In this document: positions 45,698-64,000 of the stretch, in pieces
Layout of the letters: every line of letters begins with the position of its first letter
How positions within the stretch are numbered: the stretch's first letter is position 1
Assembly (NCBI RefSeq): GCF_000143415.4
Contig: NW_003314434.1
Coordinates: 62,001 to 126,000, forward strand
Reading direction: 5' to 3'
DNA from: Selaginella moellendorffii
Lineage: Eukaryota > Plantae > Lycopodiophyta
Length of the DNA stretch: 64,000 nucleotides
Program-made: the position numbers and the translations under genes
Notes under the pieces: generated by a model
What the model was told of the DNA's origin: nothing
What the model saw: only the letters and a program-made list of their open reading frames with translations
The model's database searches: none

Positions 45698-46922
45698 TCA
45701 AACCGAGCTGACATATTCTTCGTGCTCCTCCTTGTTGTCAGGAATTGCCGGCGGTGCCGCGCTCGATTCAACGTAGCCGCCATACACATACGATACGAAT
45801 CCCCAGCAGGAGAGGAGCAGAGCCATGACTTTAAGCCCACCAAAAGCGTCATGGAAGAAGATATATGCAAACACTGCTCCCACTGGGATCACCACGGTAA
45901 GAATCACTCCAGCCAGCAGCGACGATGAGAGAAAAATAACACCCATTGTTCCCAGGAACGCAGCTTGCCAGGCCAGAGTGGAGCACAACAAAGTCACGAA
46001 GTAGGCGAGACTTCCGGCCTTGAACACCGCGGCCTCGACGTGAATGGCCTCAAAGTCGTTGTTGATGGCCATGCCGACAGTGGAGACGATGGTAGCAACC
46101 AGCGCGGTGGAGGTTTGCATTTGCAAGACTAGCAAGGTGGACTTTCGGCCCAGGACTTTGGCAAAGACGAGCTCGGTGAGGGACAGGATGAGGCCGTAGA
46201 GTCCAGCAGCAGTGATCGTCATGACATAGCCGTGCCCCGTCTGCTCCCGGCTAACTCCCGGAAGCTCGTCGGAGCTGGAGTGGAGGCCCAAGAGCACGGC
46301 ACTGGAGCTGACGAGCACGATGGAGTTCCAGACGTATGGGCCGATGCTCTTCCGGAGGAGGAACAAGGCGAAGAGGGAGTTGAAGGCGAGCTGGCTGGAT
46401 GTCAAGAGTCCTGCAGTGGAGGCCGGGAGATACGACATCCCCCACGAGTAGAGGAAGTTGTCGAGAGCGATGAGGCAGCCGATGGAAGCGAAAGCAGCGA
46501 CGAGTTTGAAGCTGAAGGGTGCGAGAAGGTGGTGGTGGCCGGGGGAATCGCTGCTGCTGCTGCTGGCTTTGAAGTAGACGATCAGCATTGCGAGCGCACA
46601 GACCGGCCAGCCAGCGGTTTGGACCCAGCCGCAGAGCCAGCGCCGGGAGCCACCGTTGGAATAGTAGAAGCGCATGAGCAGCGTGGCGGCGATGAAACCG
46701 ACGAACATTCCGGTGGAGCTCAGGCACAGGAGCAGCCAGTGCTTGCGGCTCTTGCTCCTCAAGGCCCGCGCCAAGGCCGTGCTCCATTCGCCATCGAAAG
46801 CACTCAAGCCTGGAAAACCAAAATACCAACACCGTACGTTTCGGTTCTTTATATGCAAGGTGGATCTCACCTTTGGGCATGGTCTCTTCTGGAGCAACTT
46901 TGTCGGCATTGAGCTCCGCCAT
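45698..46922 (-). CDS. Purine permease (PUP) family transporter, 2 exons
   Basis: RFYYSNGGSRRWLCGWVQTAGWP, DNFLYSWGMSYLPAST, SQLAFNSLF, SSLLAGVI; many hydrophobic segments; ATG at 46922 with a short first exon. Confidence 0.9.
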
Positions 46923-55084: not shown

Positions 55085-55343
55085 CGCGAGGATGGAAACC
55101 CTGAGATTTTAGGCTACATTTTCACAGACATAGAACATTCCCGCGGAGGAATTGACGATGAATCTGGACCGTCGGATCATGGTCGGTGCCTTGTCTTGTC
55201 AGCTAACCGGCCCCAGATCTACCTGTGTGCTTGGCCATTGCAGCGAGGGCATTGGGTCTTCTTTTTCTCACACTCTCCGCGGTTAAGATTCCAGATTTGT
55301 GGAGAAGTTTCTCTTGTGTGGGAAGAACTGGCAATCGATCAGG

Positions 55344-56364
55344 ATGGCGCGGAGGTGCTCGCATTGTGGCCACAATGGCCACAACTCGAGGACGTGTCCG
55401 GATCGCGGCATCCGGTTGTTTGGCGTGAGGCTCACGATGAAGGCCACGGACGGCGCGAGCGGCGTAGCGATGCGGAGGAGCGCCAGCGCAGGGAATTTGG
55501 TGACAATGCAAGCAATCGCGACGCCGACGAGCAGCTCCGCGGTCGCGTCGGAGCAATCTGAGTCGGGCGGCGATGGCTACGCCTCGGATGGGCTCGTCCA
55601 GGCGTCGAGCTACGCGAGAGCGAGGAAGAAAGGTAAATTGCAGCCCAATTCTCGCCCATTCTCGCGATCTCTCGGCTTGGGTCGCTTCCAATCCTCCTCA
55701 ATTCACGTCGTCCACACCGCAATTGGCTGAATCTCTCTGGAAATTTTCCAGGTGTTCCGTGGAGGGAGGAAGAACACCGGCTGTTCTTGGTGGGTCTCCA
55801 CGCGCTGGGGAAAGGAGATTGGCGGGGGATCTCGAGGAATTACGTGACGAGCAGGACGCCGACGCAGGTCGCGAGCCACGCGCAGAAGTATTTCATCCGC
55901 CAGAGCAATCTCACCAAGCGCAAGCGCCGCTCCAGCTTGTTTGACATCTCCCCAGAGGTAAGAAGAAGCATCCACTTGTTCTTCCACTGACCTTGGAACA
56001 AGGACAGGCGGATTGTAATCCCCGGAGAAATCTTCGTGGCAAGCAGGCAATGGACGATGCAACGAGCTCGGATCCAAGGGAATCTCCCAGATTCCAAAGG
56101 CATCTTCCACCGCTCGCGCCCCAGGAGGAGAGCATTTCGTCATCTTCCGTGGAAAATCCGCGACAGTGGCTGTGTATATCCACGTCGCCAAATCCAGCGG
56201 CGGATAAGTTAGCGGGGCCTAAGCCCAAAACCCCTGCTAAAACCTTAGCACTGGAGGAGGAACCGGAGGACCTGACGAGGCTAAGCCTCGGCTCCGCCAA
56301 CTTAGTGGCCCCGCCTAATCTGGAGAAGCTTGCCCCCACTTCGGAGCCAATAAGCGTAGTTTAA
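55344..56364 (+). CDS. CCHC zinc-knuckle + 1R-MYB (SHAQKYF) repressor, MYBS3/KUA1/MYBH-like
   Basis: [23 protein letters not shown] repression motif, [46 protein letters not shown]. Confidence 0.92.
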
Positions 56365-56738
56365 ACCAGACCTTGAAAAACGTACATACCTTTTATTTGA
56401 CTTTTTACTGGAGAAAGGGAATACGAGCAGGAGGAGATATGGCGTATCCAAGCACGTGTTTCGTGTGCCAGGTTTAGGGCAAATATATCTATCAGAATTT
56501 ACCCTTGCATTTTGTCCAATGGATAAAGAAATATATATACGGCAGGAGAAAAGATAAAAATGCATTGCAGTTATTTTACCCCTTTTATTATCGCAGTGAG
56601 CTGGAGAGAGTTTTGGCCTAGGTCTGAAATAAAATTAGGGTTTGTGCGTGCGAGTGGAGCTCACAATCGAGGTAAGCGTGCGAGCCCGAGAGCACGGCGC
56701 CGGCGCATCGCGTGGATTACCAGGAATGCGCGTTCGAA

Positions 56739-59700
56739 ATGGAGGAGATTTCTGGCAGCAGCAGCGGCAACAGCAGCAGCAGCAGCAGCAGCAACAACGG
56801 CGGCGACGAGTGGGCGGCGAGAGGGCTGGAGAATGAGCCCCATTCCTCCATGCCCGAGTTGGAACAACAGGAGCGCCGGATCCTGAGAGGGAAAGGTCTA
56901 GCTCGCAGCTCCAGCGGCATTAGCGGCAGTGAGGACATTGGAACGAGCTCCACTGCCGCTGGCGCTGGCGAATCGCTCAGGGGGTACCAGAGCAGTGCTG
57001 CGTTGAAGGCTTGCTCGGATTCCCTGTCTCTGGGGTTTGAGTTTGGGGATGTAGATGGTTCCAGGATCGCGGCGGAGATTATCTCGGAGCTTGGGCGGGG
57101 GCTTCGCAATCAAGCCGAGGCACTGAGGATCATGGAAGAGGATACTCCTGAGACCGAGCAGCAGTGTTTTTTGCTAGCGCCTCCGGGAGCTAACAAGTCC
57201 CAGCTACACAAGCTTTCCAAGAGGACGAAGCTTGTTACTTTTGCTGCGTAAGTCTTGGTGGTTTTACCTTCCATAAATTCCTTTTGGATTTTTTATGACA
57301 CCACTGCAGGCGTAGGAAGACTCGAGAGACGCAGGCTTTTGAGCTACAGATCCAGGAGCTTCGCAGGGAGATGTCTATCGCAGAGAAGGAGGAAGAGAAA
57401 ATCGTTCCCATCGCGCCCCGGGAGGTGGAGCCAGAAGAACCTTTTGCTGGAGAGGCTAGGATGGATCTTACAGATGATTTGCTTCACAAGGTAACTTTTG
57501 TTTATTGATGTGGAGCTAGAATACCTGTTGAAACTGTGCAGGTTTTCTCTTATCTGGATGACGTCTCCTTGTGTCGTGCGGCAATAGTTTGTCGGCAATG
57601 GCGTGTCGCAAGTGCGCACGAGGACTTTTGGAAGATTTTGAATTTTGAAGGCCGACGGGTGACTCCGAAGCAAGGTGACCGCATCAATGTTGCAATTGTT
57701 TCTTACAAAATCTTCTGCAGTGAGAAACTTATGCCAAAGGTATCCCAACGCAATCGAGCTAAACCTGAAATGTAAAATTGTGGAGGATCTACTTGCGCTT
57801 GACGCAATCCGGAGCCTCAGGTGACGAGTAATTCAAGTGATTACTTTTTCATGCACTCATCCCTGTTTTTTCTTTGAATTTCAGAGCACTGCAGGTTCTT
57901 AGCTTGGGAGAGGGGTTATATGGTGATCCGTTCTTTCACGCTTTATCGGCCGAATGCGCTAGTTTGAGAACTTTGAGTATTTCAGACGCTGTCTTAGGCA
58001 GTGGAGCTTCTCAAGAGATACAGATCCGTCATGACCACTTGCTAAAACTCGATATTGTAAAATGCCGAGTTTTACGAGTTCATGTCCGGTAGGTACAGTG
58101 CTAAATGTTCAAGTTCTTGGTCCGTAACCTTATGTCTCGTTTGCAGAGGTTCACATTTGCAAGGGTTGTCTCTAAGACGCACAGGCACAGCTGCTGTAAT
58201 ACTTCACTGTCCTCGACTCTTGCGTCTTGATATATCGTCATGCCATAAGCTTTCTGATACTGGAGTGAGAGCAGCAGCGACAACCTGTCCACTTTTGTCG
58301 GAGCTGGATATATCTCATTGCTCTTATGTCAGTGATGAAACTCTGCGAGAGATTGCTATCGCGTGCTCAAACTTGAGGTCCCTTGATGCTTCAAATTGTC
58401 CTAACATTTCTCTTGAAGTAAGCATGAGAGTTGTAAGTTTGCGGATTAAATTCTGAGTCCGATTTTGCAGGGTGTTCGGATGCCAGTGCTCGTTTCTTTG
58501 ACCCTTGTCAATTGCGAAGGAATCAATTCCTCGTCTATGACGGCCATCTCTCATTGTTACATGCTCGAAGTAAGTCAAGGATGGACTTTGCACCCTGTTA
58601 ACTTTAGTCCTTCTCTTGCAGGAACTTCTTCTTGATTTTTGCTGGTTGCTGACGACGGTATCGCTAGACTTACCGCGCCTAAAGAAGATCAGTTTGACAA
58701 ACTGTCGGAAGTAAGTCCTCTTTTGTTTTATGGTCCCTTTCACTTTTTGGCATCTTTCACTTGGATCAGGTTTTCAGAGCTTGCTCTTCGTTCGCCAGCT
58801 CTGACATCGATCGATGTCACAAAGTGTCCAATGCTCAACAGAATTGATATAAGTTCGAGTAGCCTTCAGGTAAAGTGTCGGCTACGTGTTATAAATTACT
58901 TACATTCTATATACATTTTCTAACAGAAGCTAGTTCTAAATCAACAACAAAACCTGGCGACCATACTTTTGCAATGCCCATCCTTGTACGAGGTCGACTT
59001 GACAGACTGTGACTCGCTTTCGAACTCTTTATGTGAAGTCTTCAGTAATGGGGGCGGATGCCCGCGATTGAGATCACTTATCCTCGACAGCTGTGAGGTA
59101 TGTCCTTTCTGTTTCTCGAAATGGCAAGTGCACATGAGTACGCTGTGCAGGGTCTAACGGCTATAAGGTTATCGAGCTCATCGTTACTTTATTTATCTCT
59201 TGCTGGCTGCCGAACAGTTTCCTCTATCGATCTTCAGTGTCCAGAGCTTCAACGCTTGCTGTTAGATGGATGTGACCATCTCAGTCGGGCAAGCTTAAAA
59301 CCGGTATGTTTTCTTGGTTGGGTAATTGATGACTTAGATGCTGCTGTGTTGTGGCAGGTCGGATTGAGATCCTTAAATCTTGGAATCTGTCCCCACCTGA
59401 AAACACTTGTCATCAGAGCGGATCAGATGGTGGCTCTTGATCTCAGGGGGTGTGGAATTCTTCGCCAGGCGGAAATCATTTGCCCGTCTCTCCTGTCTTT
59501 AGATGCTTCGTACTGCAGGTTTGATCTGATAACACGTACGTTACTTGGTTGTTACTGATGCTGTACTGTGCAGCCAACTAGGAGATGACTGTCTTGCGGC
59601 CACGAGTAATGCATGCTCGCTTATACAGTCCCTTGTTCTGGCGTCATGTCCTTCCGTGGGACCAAGTGGTTTGCTAGCCTTGAAGCAGTTGCCGGGCTTA

Positions 59701-60676
59701 ACAGTTTTGGACCTCTCTTACACATTTTTGACCGACTTGTCTCCCATCTACGAAGCATGTCCTCAGTTGGAGGTCAGTGATTATCTTCGGAAAATTGTTG
59801 GGTGTTAAATTTTTTTCTCTCCAGGTCTTGAGGCTCTCTGCGTGTAAATACCTCGCCAACGACGCTTTGGTCGCCTTGCATGGTGGAAAACTACTTCCGG
59901 ATCTGCAAGAACTTGATCTTTCGTATGGGAGCCTTGACCGGAATGCAATCGACGGGCTGCTGTCGGAATGTCCCCACCTCAAACACGTCAGTCTCAATGG
60001 CTGCTCCAACGTGTTTGACATCGAGTGGCCGTCTGCAAGCACCGAGGAGGATACCCATATGCACGATGCTGACCGTGAAGAACAGCCAATGGAAGTTTCA
60101 GCGGAGAGGTGCTTGCAGACTTTGAACTGCGTCGGGTGCCCCAACATCAAGAGAGTTTTCATTCCGTCATCGGCTGGTTGCCTCCATCTCTCGATTCTGA
60201 ACCTCTCCTTGTCCACCAACATAAAGGAGGTACGACTGGCGTGCACGAACTTGATAGCTTTGAACTTGAGGTATGTGGATCGCATTCGCCTATCACCTTT
60301 GCCCTCTAACTTTGTGTTCTTTTAGTAACTGCCTGTCGCTCATGGATCTTAAACTGGATTGTCCCAAGCTCGTGAGCCTGTGTTTGCAGGTACTTAGTTT
60401 TCTTACGCCCAAAAAAAAAAACCTCTTTTCATCTCACCTCCTCGCTTGTAGGCATCTGGAATCGAGGAAGGCGAGCTGGAAGAAGCCATAAGAGATTGCA
60501 GTTTGCTGGAGACTTTAGACCTTCGGAACTGCCCAAAGGTGTGCCGACTTTCACTTTATTGCTCTTCTTTTCGCTAAAGCTGTTCCTTACAGATACAAAC
60601 TTCTACCCTGGTGAAAATACGAGCGATTCGTCCTGGAATAAAGCGACTCTATAACAGTTGGGGGACACCCGGCTAG
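56739..60676 (+). CDS. F-box/LRR protein 15 (SLOMO-like), multi-exon
   Basis: MDLTDDLLHK/VFSYLDDVSLCRAAIVCRQWRVASAHEDFW; CEVFSNGGGCPRLRSLILD; LSLDASYC; LTVLDLSYTFL; many Cys-LRRs; stop at 60674-60676. Confidence 0.9.
56754..56806 (+). repeat. (GCA)n microsatellite encoding poly-Ser/Asn
   Basis: GGCAGCAGCAGCGGCAACAGCAGCAGCAGCAGCAGCAGCAACAAC. Confidence 0.85.
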
Positions 60677-60855
60677 TAGCGCTGCTATTGTACAGGAAAA
60701 AGGAACAAAAGATAGCCGGCGACCAAAGATTATGAAAAGGAAAGGAGCTCCACCATCATCCAAGTGAGTGTGGATGGCTTGTTAGCATTGTTCGTGCTAA
60801 TAGCCATATAGTTTTGACAGGATATTATTGCCGGATAGCTGCCACAGTGAAAGCC

Positions 60856-61500
60856 TCAAAAGGTCCATTGTAATATCATAAATTCCCAGTATGTATGTTC
60901 AAGCTTCTTCTTCTGTCTTCTTCCGATGGTTCCTTCTGTCTTCTTACATGTGAAAGAAACATGCCGATGAGATATCAAAACTCGAAGCATGAAAACTCTA
61001 GTACCTGGAGCTCGCTAAGTTGCTGCTGCAAATAGACCTTCCGAACCAGTGGAATTTGCGAGAGGTTTTTAAGTGCAGCGAGTTCCTGTTTACAATCTAA
61101 AGACTTTAGTATGAATCACAACGCAAATTCCAACTTGCCTTTTCTAGCTCTGTGAGTTCCAGCGAGTAGGCGTTGGACACACGCGCAGAGAGTTCTTCCG
61201 CACGCTGGATAGCCTCCTTTGCGAGGTTCCCAGTCACCGCAACCAATCGCCTCGTACCCTTGGCGACTCCCTCTTCCGAGACAATAGCAAATGCCTCGGC
61301 CTGTCTAGTGTTCGAGAGGTGCGTTCCTGATAGTCGAATTTAGCGAGCTTTTTCGTTGCTAAACGATATCAACTTACCTCCGCACAGCTCCACCGAATGG
61401 GTCACGCAAGATGGATCATTAAGTTGGCGAGAAAGGAGGGAGATAAGCTCGCCAAGGCATGGATCCGCACCATCTTCTGGGTGTGCTACCGCGTCAACCT
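60856..61500 (-). pseudogene. Intron-containing alanyl-tRNA synthetase fragment (editing tRNA_SAD subdomain + linker)
   Basis: SVELCGG/THLSNTRQAEAFAIVSEEGVAKGTRRLVAVT..ELEK/ELAALKNLSQIPLVRKVYLQQQLSELQ/KTEGTIGR. The upstream frame is disrupted. Confidence 0.8.
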
Positions 61501-61746
61501 GCCAGGAAAAGGCTGCCATCTCCTTCGATGATGCCTGGGAGCTCCACCGGAAATGCACTCCCGGCCAACTCGGCCAGCTCTCTTTCATCGTCAAGCGTCA
61601 ACGCCGCGCCTGTGAGCCGATCAACAAGTTTGATGTTCTGAGAGCCTTCTCTCTAGGATTCCCCGCCGTAGCCGTCGAGGACGAGGCTGTGGCTGCAGCC
61701 ATCCTTAACTTAGTTCTCGCATAACGGTACGAGTTCATCTGTTTTA

Positions 61747-61813
61747 CATTTGTTTCATACAGCTCTTGACAATTCTCCCATTTGTTTCATACAGCTCTTG
61801 ACAACTCTCCCAT
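61747..61813. repeat. 32-bp tandem duplication
   Basis: CATTTGTTTCATACAGCTCTTGACAA(T/C)TCTCC x2. Confidence 0.9.
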
Positions 61814-61886
61814 CTTTAGAACACTACCGCTAATGGTATGGTACTTTTTATTCTTGTTTCGTTCAGCTCTAACAGTTATCGCATTT

Positions 61887-64000
61887 TTAGGATGAAAAAA
61901 TGTGAGCAGCGTGCTCCTCGGCTATGAGCATCGCTTTGCTGATTCCATCAACGTTGCTGCCCTGAAACAATATGAACATGTAAACGAGACGAGAAACTAA
62001 TACAAGGAAGGAGCTTACTTGTCCCTGAGCAAACATGGACTCGCCACCACTGTTCCCATTCAATGGCTCCAAAGCCTTTCTCAGCCACTCGACAGCGCCG
62101 ACTCCATTCCCCGCCACGAAACTTGGGACTCCAGCGCAGACCAGCACCTTTCTCGCCACTGAATCGACACTGAAGATCATCGTCGCAACGCTCTGAAAAT
62201 TAGCACACCACGGCAAGAAGTCATGATTGGTGATCGATCGAAAACACAGCCTTACTCTCTCGGTGCCTGCTGCAACACCTTCCCGGAGAGCAGTCGTGTC
62301 GAGGCCAACGTCGACTCTTAGAACGGACCATTTGAGGCCCCGCAAAACTGCCTGATCCACACAGCAAACTGTTGTCTCTATTGCTCTCTGCAGATTCAAG
62401 TCCAGAGCCCGTTGTCTTCCGATGGTTTCTTCTGTTGTGGTGGTTATGGGGGTTGACAGTAGCACAGATATCTCGAGCCCGCGGCTAAAAGCTTGGTTGA
62501 AGAGAATGCGCGTGTGGAGTGGAGAGATAAATGGGAACCACGAGAGGAAGATGATGGGAGCGAAGATCACGTAGCCCATGCCGACGTCGTAGCTCCAGGC
62601 CCAGACGGACATGAGCCACCACAGCCTCGCCTTCTTGAGCCATGGTTTGCAAGCTATGCCAATCTGCGAAGAAAGAGTTGGAGGTGATAATGGATTGGAG
62701 GGAAGCTACACAAAGCTTACGCTGAGAATCCCCCAGCCGGTGGGAATGAGAGCTAGGATGCTCGCTATAACATCCAGGACTTGGAGCCTCAGCGTGAAGA
62801 CGCATCCGGTGATGAAGGCAGCGAGAAGAACTATGAATGCAAGGAAGTGAACAAAGCGGAGCTTGTTACTGCTCCTTGGGCTGAGCGACAGGAACTACAA
62901 AAGAGAGAAACGTTTGATTAGCGTGAGAGCTGGCTGGGTTTGGAGCTTACCGCCACTAGCAAGCCTATGCAAACGAACAACACCCATGAACTTGCGTACA
63001 CCTGACAGCACAAGCTCTCTTGTTTGTGCATGCTCTTAAAGACGAAAACACAGCTTTTACCAGCAGAGAGATTGTTCCGACACCCGACCTGAGGTGATAA
63101 GCCACTCCAAACTGGATAAGGAAGAAGCGTAAGCTCAGGATGCATTCCACGGCTCTAGCTCGGAAGCCCATCAAATCCGTCTAGCAGAAAGAACAAGAGA
63201 AACACGAAACTAGTAGTTTTCAAGTTGGATAACTTTTCTTGTACCCGTTTTTCCCACCAGGTGGCCCAGCTCTCGTAATCCGGGGCGGAATGGCTCTTGT
63301 TTGTAAGCCAGTTATTCCAGTTGGTTATGTCTTCCACAGTCCTGGAAAAGAAGAATTTATCATTCGTGCAAACAACGCCATCAGACTAACTTACTTTTGC
63401 CACTCAAAGCTGAGTGGATTGAAGAAAAACGGGGCGTAGAGCCAGCATATGGCAAGGAAACCGATGTCCAGAGCCAGTAGAACGTATCCTTTTCTTGTCC
63501 GTTGTGCTCCATATACCACGTAGACGAACAACAGCATTGCTATCTCCAAACTACACGGGGATTAGCTTCGAACGAGGACATAAAAGACGTACCCTTTGAC
63601 AAAATGGCTGCGCGAGTAGAAGCGATAGTTCTCAGCAAAATGGACGTGCTCAATGACAAATCCACGCCCAGTGCTGCGATACTGACACACAACATCCATG
63701 GTTTAGAGGAGCTTCGAAGTTAATTCTTTCTTCACTTGCCATTGCACCTCCATGGAGTATCGTCCTACCAAAGTAGTGTGTTCTTGTGGCCAACGAGAAA
63801 GCAAAGAAAATAAACGAGCCCAGCAGCCACATGAGAATGAAGTACTGTAGAGCCTGAAAGTGAATAAAACTGAGCTTGTGAGACATTCCTTGTAAACTTG
63901 GAAAACATCACCTTGAGAAAGCCTTGCTCCAAAATGTAGCCCGTGACCATGGGAGCGCAGTTTAAGAACCCATACTGAAAAATCGCTTGCGTTGCAAGCA
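61887..64000 (-). CDS. Callose synthase (GSL/CalS, GT48) 3' portion with an in-frame AlaRS C-terminal extension; 5' part lies beyond the window
   Basis: RTHYFGRTILHGGA/YRSTGRGFV..FAENYRFYSRSHFVKG; YAPFFFNPLSFEWQK; ILSLRFF; IPTGWGILS; LSWFPFIS..TRILFNQAFSRGLEIS; the frame then continues into VLRVDVGLD..VCAGVP..EWL..AL.PL.G..AQGQG. Confidence 0.9.

Follow-up and report, generated by a model that had tools for sequence, protein, structure and literature searches.

A callose synthase allele of Selaginella moellendorffii with an in-frame alanyl-tRNA synthetase C-terminus: a probably young, hemizygous insertion

The window analysed here is the 64-kb stretch GL377738.1:62001-126000 of the S. moellendorffii assembly GCA_000143415.2. 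It ends within the 3′ part of a callose synthase (CalS) gene on the minus strand, whose reading frame runs on into the C-terminal (C-Ala/DHHA1) region of an alanyl-tRNA synthetase (AlaRS) carried by a 1473-bp insert. The open reading frame at 61887-62612 (minus strand, 241 residues) is free of stops, begins in the last CalS exon (..WFPFISPLHTRILFNQAFSRGLEIS) and ends in ..AAHIFSS, and its stop codon at 61887-61889 is that of AlaRS itself. CalS and AlaRS meet at 62414/62415, 17 codons past the conserved CalS terminal motif and within the gene's own variable tail (..VLLSTPITTTTEETIGR/QRALDLNLQ..), and after ..VLLSTPITTTTEETIGR the sequence switches to QRALDLNLQRAIETT... The fused allele reads CalS..EETIGR-QR-ALDLNLQ..IFSS and stop; its own last 21 residues, part of that variable tail, are swapped for 135 new ones, which after splicing are QR and 133 AlaRS residues.

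Reads were taken from three RNA-like runs (X25, X10 and X11, from three studies) and from X1, a DNA run that is Hi-C-like, with loose ends beginning or finishing in GATC. The letters of the X1 contigs fit neither assembled haplotype (e.g. 62481 T), and X1 is a third genotype. The S. moellendorffii assembly of Banks et al. 2011 reportedly includes both haplotypes of one heterozygous plant, and the allelic scaffolds of this locus, which are ~98% identical, are consistent with this. The allelic scaffold, GL377684.1, is called L002 below. The region L003 (GL377738.1) is identical to window 40311-61274; its 10-kb flank ends at window 61274, and no gene is called in 60677-61274. L002-haplotype letters are present in the RNA-like contigs (60605 G, a 1-nucleotide (nt) gap at 60707, 62463 G), indicating that the sequenced plants express both alleles. 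The fused gene consists of the following parts.

62415..64000, minus strand: 3′ part of the callose synthase (GT48, CalS9/10-like) gene (RNA joints, tblastn, open spliced reconstruction)
62256..62414, minus strand: tail segment 1, extending the last CalS exon (QRALDLNLQRAIETT..VDVGLDTTALREGVAAGTER; RNA-like contigs of X25, X10 and X11)
62193..62255, minus strand: tail intron 1, 63 nt, GT..AG, from AlaRS (skipped in the X25, X10 and X11 contigs)
62018..62192, minus strand: tail exon 2 (SVATMIFSVD..VEWLRKALEPLNGNSGGESMFAQGQ), core of the DHHA1/C-Ala fold (Pfam, 5T5S alignment, RNA-like contigs)
~61961..62017, minus strand: tail intron 2, 57 nt, GT..AG upon a 1-nt shift (RNA-like contigs, splice ends)
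61887..61960, minus strand: tail exon 3 (GSNVDGISKAMLIAEEHAAHIFSS) with the stop at 61887-61889 (aligns to the extreme C-terminus of plant AlaRS)
61739..61886, minus strand: 3′ untranslated region (3′UTR) of the fusion transcript, AlaRS-derived (contigs end at 61739 in X25 and at 61768 in X11)

The CalS part in the window comprises 9 exon blocks with 379 codons, ending ..FNQAFSRGLEISVLLSTPITTTTEETIGR, and the gene continues beyond the window end. These 379 residues are open after splicing, and the canonical splice sites agree with the RNA joints. Tested on the in-window portion, which is the last 379 residues only, residues 1526-1897 of the CalS9 protein P0047 are co-linear with window 63998-62454 by tblastn, and the conserved C-terminal motif WFPF..FNQAFSRGL(E/Q)IS is present as WFPFISPLHTRILFNQAFSRGLEIS at about 62540-62466. 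The allelic CalS model on L002 has two Pfam domains and no others, FKS1_dom1 and Glucan_synthase (PF02364), as a member of the CalS family should. In its GT48 core, its division into numerous short exons and its terminal motif WFPF..FNQAFSRGLEISVLL, the gene resembles CalS9/CalS10-type callose synthases such as P0047. The proteins differ in what follows the motif, because P0047 stops 12 residues past it, whereas the allele without the insert (hereafter the empty allele) continues for 38 residues and the fused allele for 152, of which 135 are foreign.

The tail matches the C-termini of plant cytosolic-type AlaRS end to end over their last ~130 residues (E 1e-27 to 1e-25). Its residues 1-134 correspond to residues 852-974, 843-972, 863-997 and 859-991 of four plant AlaRS with 45-49% identity, and among solved structures the human AlaRS C-Ala domain 5T5S matches best (E 4.5e-4). 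The Pfam DHHA1 model (PF02272) scored below its cut-off of 25.9 bits, with 18.2 bits (E 0.0036) for exon 2 alone and 17.7 for the unspliced frame. Like the C-Ala domain of AlaRS (DHHA1-like; human 5T5S/5T76), the tail includes the whole globular C-terminal domain up to the AlaRS stop; unlike it, the tail is separated from the aminoacylation, editing and helical parts and its DHHA1 score is under the cut-off. The motif G-x-G-G-G-K before AQGQ is not kept, since the window reads NGNSGGESMFAQGQ, with NGNSGGE in place of the NGNGGGK of AlaRS. Both tail introns are stop-free multiples of three, so the unspliced frame is also open.

These results confirm what a first-pass annotation, made from the sequence alone, had proposed, namely an in-frame chimera of a CalS with intact visible exons and AlaRS C-Ala, and the similarity check and the RNA check across the junction and tail introns that it called for both came out in favor of the proposal. 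Some details required correction. The frame does continue past the terminal motif, but the junction lies 17 codons beyond it and not directly after; the two proposed tail introns are both spliced in RNA, but the first tail exon extends through ..REGVAAGTER to the intron at 62193-62255; and the extension, given as ~150 residues, is real AlaRS but 135 residues long.

Contigs of X25, X10 and X11 cover 61739/61768-61960, 62018-62192 and 62256-62444 with 0 mismatches and with both tail introns removed. Beyond 62409/62410, where parent-type AlaRS departs, they continue for 35 nt into sequence specific to CalS. The contig of CalS itself begins at 62415; the resulting 30-nt overlap is what a branch point in a k=31 graph usually produces, and the other branch is the joint 60941->62415 of the empty allele. 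Each of the three runs therefore holds the chimeric and the empty forms together. The depth of the tail contigs was ~0.4-0.7 of that of the CalS trunk, and RNA depth was 0 or near 0 over 61005-61672, indicating that the fusion transcript ends in the AlaRS-derived 3′UTR. The transcribed part of the insert is restricted to the C-Ala exons, the stop codon and the 3′UTR, with at most trace RNA over 61425..61738 and little or none over the remaining AlaRS part, where the sole contig (X10, depth 2.4) continues as the parent does. Within the 3′UTR, a 32-nt tandem repeat (perfect/97%) is located at 61747-61810. Because the RNA contigs end at or near this repeat (61739, 61768), placement of the poly(A) site is only approximate.

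The other haplotype has a different end. L002 matches window 55315-60945 at 98.7% and then directly 62415-62755 at 98.5%, with a 4-nt overlap (TCTT), which shows that 1473 bp are missing from it. Its annotated CalS model of 1600 residues ends at L002 20555 in the ordinary way (..EETIGRRQKEPSEEDRRRSLNIHTGNL and stop). The joint 60941->62415, which skips the 1473 nt, was found in all three RNA-like runs and in X1, and the joined form also translates to ..EETIGRRQKEPSEEDRRRSLNIHTGNL and stop. The fusion is consequently not the gene's fixed state but that of one allele. On the left, AlaRS similarity stops exactly at the end point of the indel (60943); on the right it extends to 62409, and agreement with the parent resumes in the five final nucleotides of the insert (CGTTG). 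Since these limits coincide with the indel ends and the coding end, stop and 3′UTR of the empty allele form a coherent whole, the filled state is the derived one. The insert and its surroundings contain the following features.

60942..62414, no strand: 1473-bp insertion, this haplotype only (L002 alignment; joint 60941->62415 in reads)
60943..61424, minus strand: AlaRS piece: last part of the editing domain (..LNDPSCVTHSVELCGG / THLSNTRQAEAFAIVSEEGVAKG..), then coiled-coil exons (Pfam tRNA_SAD, tblastn)
61425..61738, no strand: presumed parental AlaRS downstream sequence (Pfam-blank; permutation junction at 61424/61425)
60919..60939 and 62415-62435, no strand: copies 1 and 2 of a 21-nt direct repeat (two units of the 23-nt tandem duplication)
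60876..60941, minus strand: displaced original CalS end, codons RQKEPSEEDRRRSLNIHTGNL and stop TGA at 60876-60878 (joined-form and L002 translations)

The displaced CalS end serves only the allele without the insert. The direct repeat belongs to a 23-nt tandem duplication (about 2.6 units) in the 3′ coding end of CalS, found at window 60918-60941 and 62415-62437 and at L002 20598-20643; its period is not a multiple of three, and hence the units are read in different frames (EETIGR / RQKEPSEED / RRRS). In the empty haplotype (L002 20598-20643) and in the joined reads, the two 21-nt copies follow each other with a 23-nt period and differ by the same C/T. The flanking repeat thus pre-exists in the empty allele, and a target-site duplication was rejected as its source; for the insert, neither transposon ends nor a target-site duplication was found.

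The AlaRS piece at 60943..61424 matched tRNA_SAD (34 bits, cut-off 24; E 2.9e-8) and, by tblastn, AlaRS residues ~720-807. In a real AlaRS the end of the editing domain and the coiled coil precede C-Ala, and the AlaRS material here is therefore permuted. X1 contigs and homology together describe the insert as a circularly permuted copy of a contiguous ~1.49-kb piece of AlaRS 3′ genomic sequence. One X1 contig joins 62409, 26 nt and 60943, which is the native AlaRS order. Other native continuations in X1 depart from the window sequence at 61421 and 61424 and are unlike each other; one of them proceeds as AlaRS coding sequence (..VAIGEPVSKL/LNDPSC..). The source segment sums to 1493 nt against 1472 nt in the insert. 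The window contains no functional AlaRS, as only the equivalents of residues about 720-983 are present, permuted, with no tRNA-synt_2c or complete editing domain, and beyond the insert there is no further AlaRS similarity anywhere in the 64 kb. Pfam gave no match for the reading frames of the middle piece (61356-61738) or for the 84- and 46-residue frames on the AlaRS side. An open frame at 61397-61531 on the plus strand ends in the middle piece (..KKLARKEGDKLAKAWIRTIFWVCYRVNLPGKGCHLLR and stop), and an X1 contig carries it further upstream (..TLAAMANDAK); a gene converging on the parental AlaRS may have its 3′ end here.

A search with region 700-960 of the S. moellendorffii AlaRS P0066 did not find the parent, P0066 and all the matches listed (120) being <= ~49% identical to the insert. 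P0066 (983 residues), the sole S. moellendorffii AlaRS found, has an odd C-terminal end and is about 45% identical to the inserted fragment. With identity this low, the genome must hold a second, more canonical cytosolic-type AlaRS, the parent.

We consider it highly likely that the locus is a young, hemizygous structural variant of the S. moellendorffii CalS gene, probably a neutral chimeric allele, that arose from an end-joined circular or tandem AlaRS fragment. The steps would be as follows. A ~1.49-kb stretch would have come from an AlaRS locus at another genomic site, as a copy or by excision, and have been circularised at a 4-nt microhomology, AAGT. It would have begun in the last part of the editing domain, taken in the coiled coil and the C-Ala/DHHA1 exons with their stop and 3′UTR, and reached about 300 bp further. 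The circle would then have been opened once, in the intron preceding the C-Ala exons (a location deduced from the reading frame), and the opened fragment joined by its ends to a break within the last CalS exon, a step that used a TCTT/CTT overlap and cost 21 nt near one end. The C-Ala exons land in frame by chance, and the insert supplies two introns, a stop codon and a transcript end of its own.

Two features of the parent-type sequence bear on this proposal. In a parent-type contig the sequences that form the two ends of the insert abut each other (..CGTTG/CTTACATG..), and both outer ends of the ~1493-nt source carry AAGT, the tetranucleotide at which they meet inside the insert (61421-61424). 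Adjacent ends and an AAGT junction are the footprint expected of a circle that was closed at a microhomology and cut once, and we infer a circular intermediate from this footprint. Judged from the reading frames, the lost 21 nt probably comprised the acceptor site of the parental intron and the opening codons of the C-Ala exon, in which case the QR of the tail would derive from nucleotides of the former AlaRS intron. Reintegration of extrachromosomal circular DNA (eccDNA) has been reviewed (PMC9527254), and eccDNA with microhomology is described in rice (PMC10948907). The permuted insert with its AAGT joint resembles such events, and ~1.5 kb is within the range reported for plant eccDNA; the difference is that most documented cases are somatic or from cancer, whereas this candidate is in the germline, in frame and expressed. 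Young chimeric genes formed by exon shuffling through illegitimate recombination, by filler DNA at double-strand-break repair or by Pack-MULE/Helitron capture likewise have a gene fragment with introns inside another gene, spliced with the host and providing a new C-terminal domain, stop and transcript end, and here the junctions have 3-4-nt microhomology. Unlike in those genes, neither transposon ends nor a target-site duplication was found, and the insert is permuted and still hemizygous in the reference plant.

The age of the event was estimated from divergence. Compared with the parent-type contigs of X1, the insert has 18 mismatches in 1022 nt (about 1.8%) and 6 gaps, and the flanks of the two haplotypes diverge by 1.3-1.5%, which indicates that the insertion is no older than the scale of haplotype divergence. 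Among the differences listed, five from the parent type lie in the tail exons, of which 3 are synonymous and 2 non-synonymous. Both of the latter fall in G-x-G-G-G-K, where the window has S and E while X1 and other plant AlaRS have G and K. These two derived substitutions suggest relaxed constraint, although the sample is tiny and the parent allele comes from the X1 genotype.

Several points weigh against this account. Contig depth is a poor gauge of expression, and the three RNA-like runs may all come from one clonally propagated genotype. The contigs are short, none of them singly connecting the tail with the far-upstream CalS exons, and the fusion is known at the DNA and RNA levels. The parental AlaRS locus is represented by short contigs of one DNA run of a third genotype, and other AlaRS proteins served as the reference for polarising the five tail differences. 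The same permuted arrangement could also have come from template switching during replication or from a source present as a tandem duplicate. Finally, the insertion lies 1-5 nt from a boundary between pre-existing 23-nt units, a position that a random break does not explain.

Among the other explanations, a functional domain fusion, in which the C-Ala/DHHA1 tail is under selection as a handle for nucleic-acid or tRNA binding or for oligomerisation, fares best, although we regard it as improbable. In its favor, the frame is intact and both inherited introns are correctly spliced, the level of the fusion transcript is comparable to that of the other allele, and the stop is in the last exon, so that nonsense-mediated decay is not expected. 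In addition, the whole globular C-Ala domain is included, and CALS1 tolerates C-terminal appendages. However, the insert is on one of the two assembled haplotypes and the X1 genotype holds the empty form; an insert ~98% identical to its parent is expected to have an intact frame even without selection; derived S and E replace the G and K of the conserved motif; and the helical part of C-Ala, which contributes to AlaRS dimerisation and tRNA contact, stays in the untranscribed portion. Moreover, no other CalS+DHHA1 protein was found in database searches. The RNA-binding or interaction tail suggested in the first-pass annotation finds no support. Of the 'neutral, young or silent' fusion that it offered instead, neutral and young fit best, and silent is refuted by the fusion transcript.

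The filled state could alternatively be ancestral, the other haplotype having lost the segment through a microhomology deletion or through an excision that left a 23-nt target-site duplication. The 21-nt direct repeats that flank the insert and the TCTT at both deletion end points are compatible with such a loss, and the insert-parent divergence (1.8%) is not clearly below the haplotype divergence. But the end points and the limits of AlaRS homology are no more than a few bases apart, so the deletion must have excised exactly the foreign DNA and restored the CalS end, stop and 3′UTR. The C/T difference between the repeat units is the same in both haplotypes, showing that the repeats predate the event, and X1, the third genotype, is also empty. 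Because the insert ends fit the AlaRS limits and X1 is empty, we rejected a deletion in the other haplotype as very unlikely.

An assembly artefact, with the CalS/AlaRS junction as a scaffold misjoin, is more unlikely still. The permuted AlaRS order could come from misassembly, and the inner junctions at 61424/61425 and 60941/60942 rest on the assembly. The expressed junction, in contrast, is crossed without mismatch at 62410-62444 by contigs of the three RNA-like runs that enter the spliced tail exons; as the parent-type sequence diverges at 62409/62410, these contigs cannot be native AlaRS, and transcription ends where the model predicts. Misassembly of the expressed junction is thereby largely refuted. 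Least credible is an unusual intron of 1473 nt that would let one allele make both protein forms, because, although joined and unjoined forms occur in every RNA-like run examined, the ends are TC..TG, no shift within the 4-nt ambiguity yields GT-AG or AT-AC on either strand, and the joined form exists as DNA in X1 and the allelic scaffold, fully explaining the joined RNA; this candidate was rejected.

Under the preferred reading, a young insertion, a fusion protein is presumably made, would probably still work as a glucan synthase, and probably has no selected function. CALS has 16 transmembrane helices, with its N-terminal and central regions on the cytoplasmic side and a C-terminus that is short; C-terminally SBP-tagged CALS1 worked as a purification bait (bioRxiv 10.64898/2026.05.05.722910). 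From this topology and this tagged protein it follows that the tail would be cytosolic and need not disable the enzyme, and a tolerated cytosolic appendage is plausible. There is a slim chance that the product is a stable plasma-membrane CalS with a folded cytosolic C-Ala that alters the behavior of the enzyme, for example in tRNA or nucleic-acid binding or in complex assembly, and that selection maintains the allele in S. moellendorffii populations. If true, a selected C-Ala-tailed CalS would be a domain fusion caught at birth.

Comparable proteins were sought in databases and literature, with results in line with the earlier impression that no such example is known. An exhaustive HMMER search with the 241-residue frame, run against 1.84 billion representatives, showed no protein containing both CalS and AlaRS among the 150 of 198 matches listed; the representatives are clustered at 50% identity, so that a long CalS with a short foreign tail could hide among them and the absence is weak evidence. 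A word search with the same frame returned only short CalS fragments of other plants, and a literature search for callose synthase together with alanyl-tRNA synthetase gave no paper linking both. One candidate, P0002, appeared as a CalS running past the motif and was rejected as a read-through into non-coding sequence. A different AlaRS fusion was noted in P0169 and P0179, 1210-residue proteins from Logan assemblies with glutathione S-transferase domains and a full AlaRS.

The surroundings of the locus show further differences between the haplotypes. An F-box/LRR (FBXL15-like) gene converges on CalS at window 56739-60676 on the plus strand (L003 16429-20366, L002 16424-20356). In the empty haplotype the annotated ends of the two genes are 199 nt apart and their unstranded RNA contigs fuse; the annotated F-box/LRR product has 1016 vs 1033 residues between haplotypes. 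One A at window 60707 is missing from all four runs and from the other haplotype, and is either a haplotype difference common to all data or a single-base scaffold error. The purine permease (PUNUT) gene at window 45698-46909 on the minus strand (L002 5375-6397) encodes 403 residues here and 340 in the other haplotype, and OSA15_N has 365 vs 388 residues. The PUNUT frame of the window is identical to an NCBI protein whose 90% cluster is represented by SELMODRAFT_236291 of S. moellendorffii, from another scaffold. The length differences of PUNUT and OSA15_N may be haplotype differences or inconsistencies of the gene models.

For annotation, the locus is a warning that one of the two haplotype versions of this CalS gene in S. 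moellendorffii has a foreign C-terminus. The finding carries little weight for callose synthase biology unless the fused protein behaves differently. The permuted order, together with ends that are adjacent in the parent, makes the insert a candidate germline trace of a circular DNA that reintegrated into a plant genome. The locus adds an example to the chimeric genes that originate when a gene fragment is inserted at the DNA level, and offers a natural snapshot of how a new domain architecture starts, with a fragment of a housekeeping gene placed in frame in an unrelated membrane enzyme and immediately transcribed and spliced, while the unaltered allele on the sister chromosome provides a built-in control.

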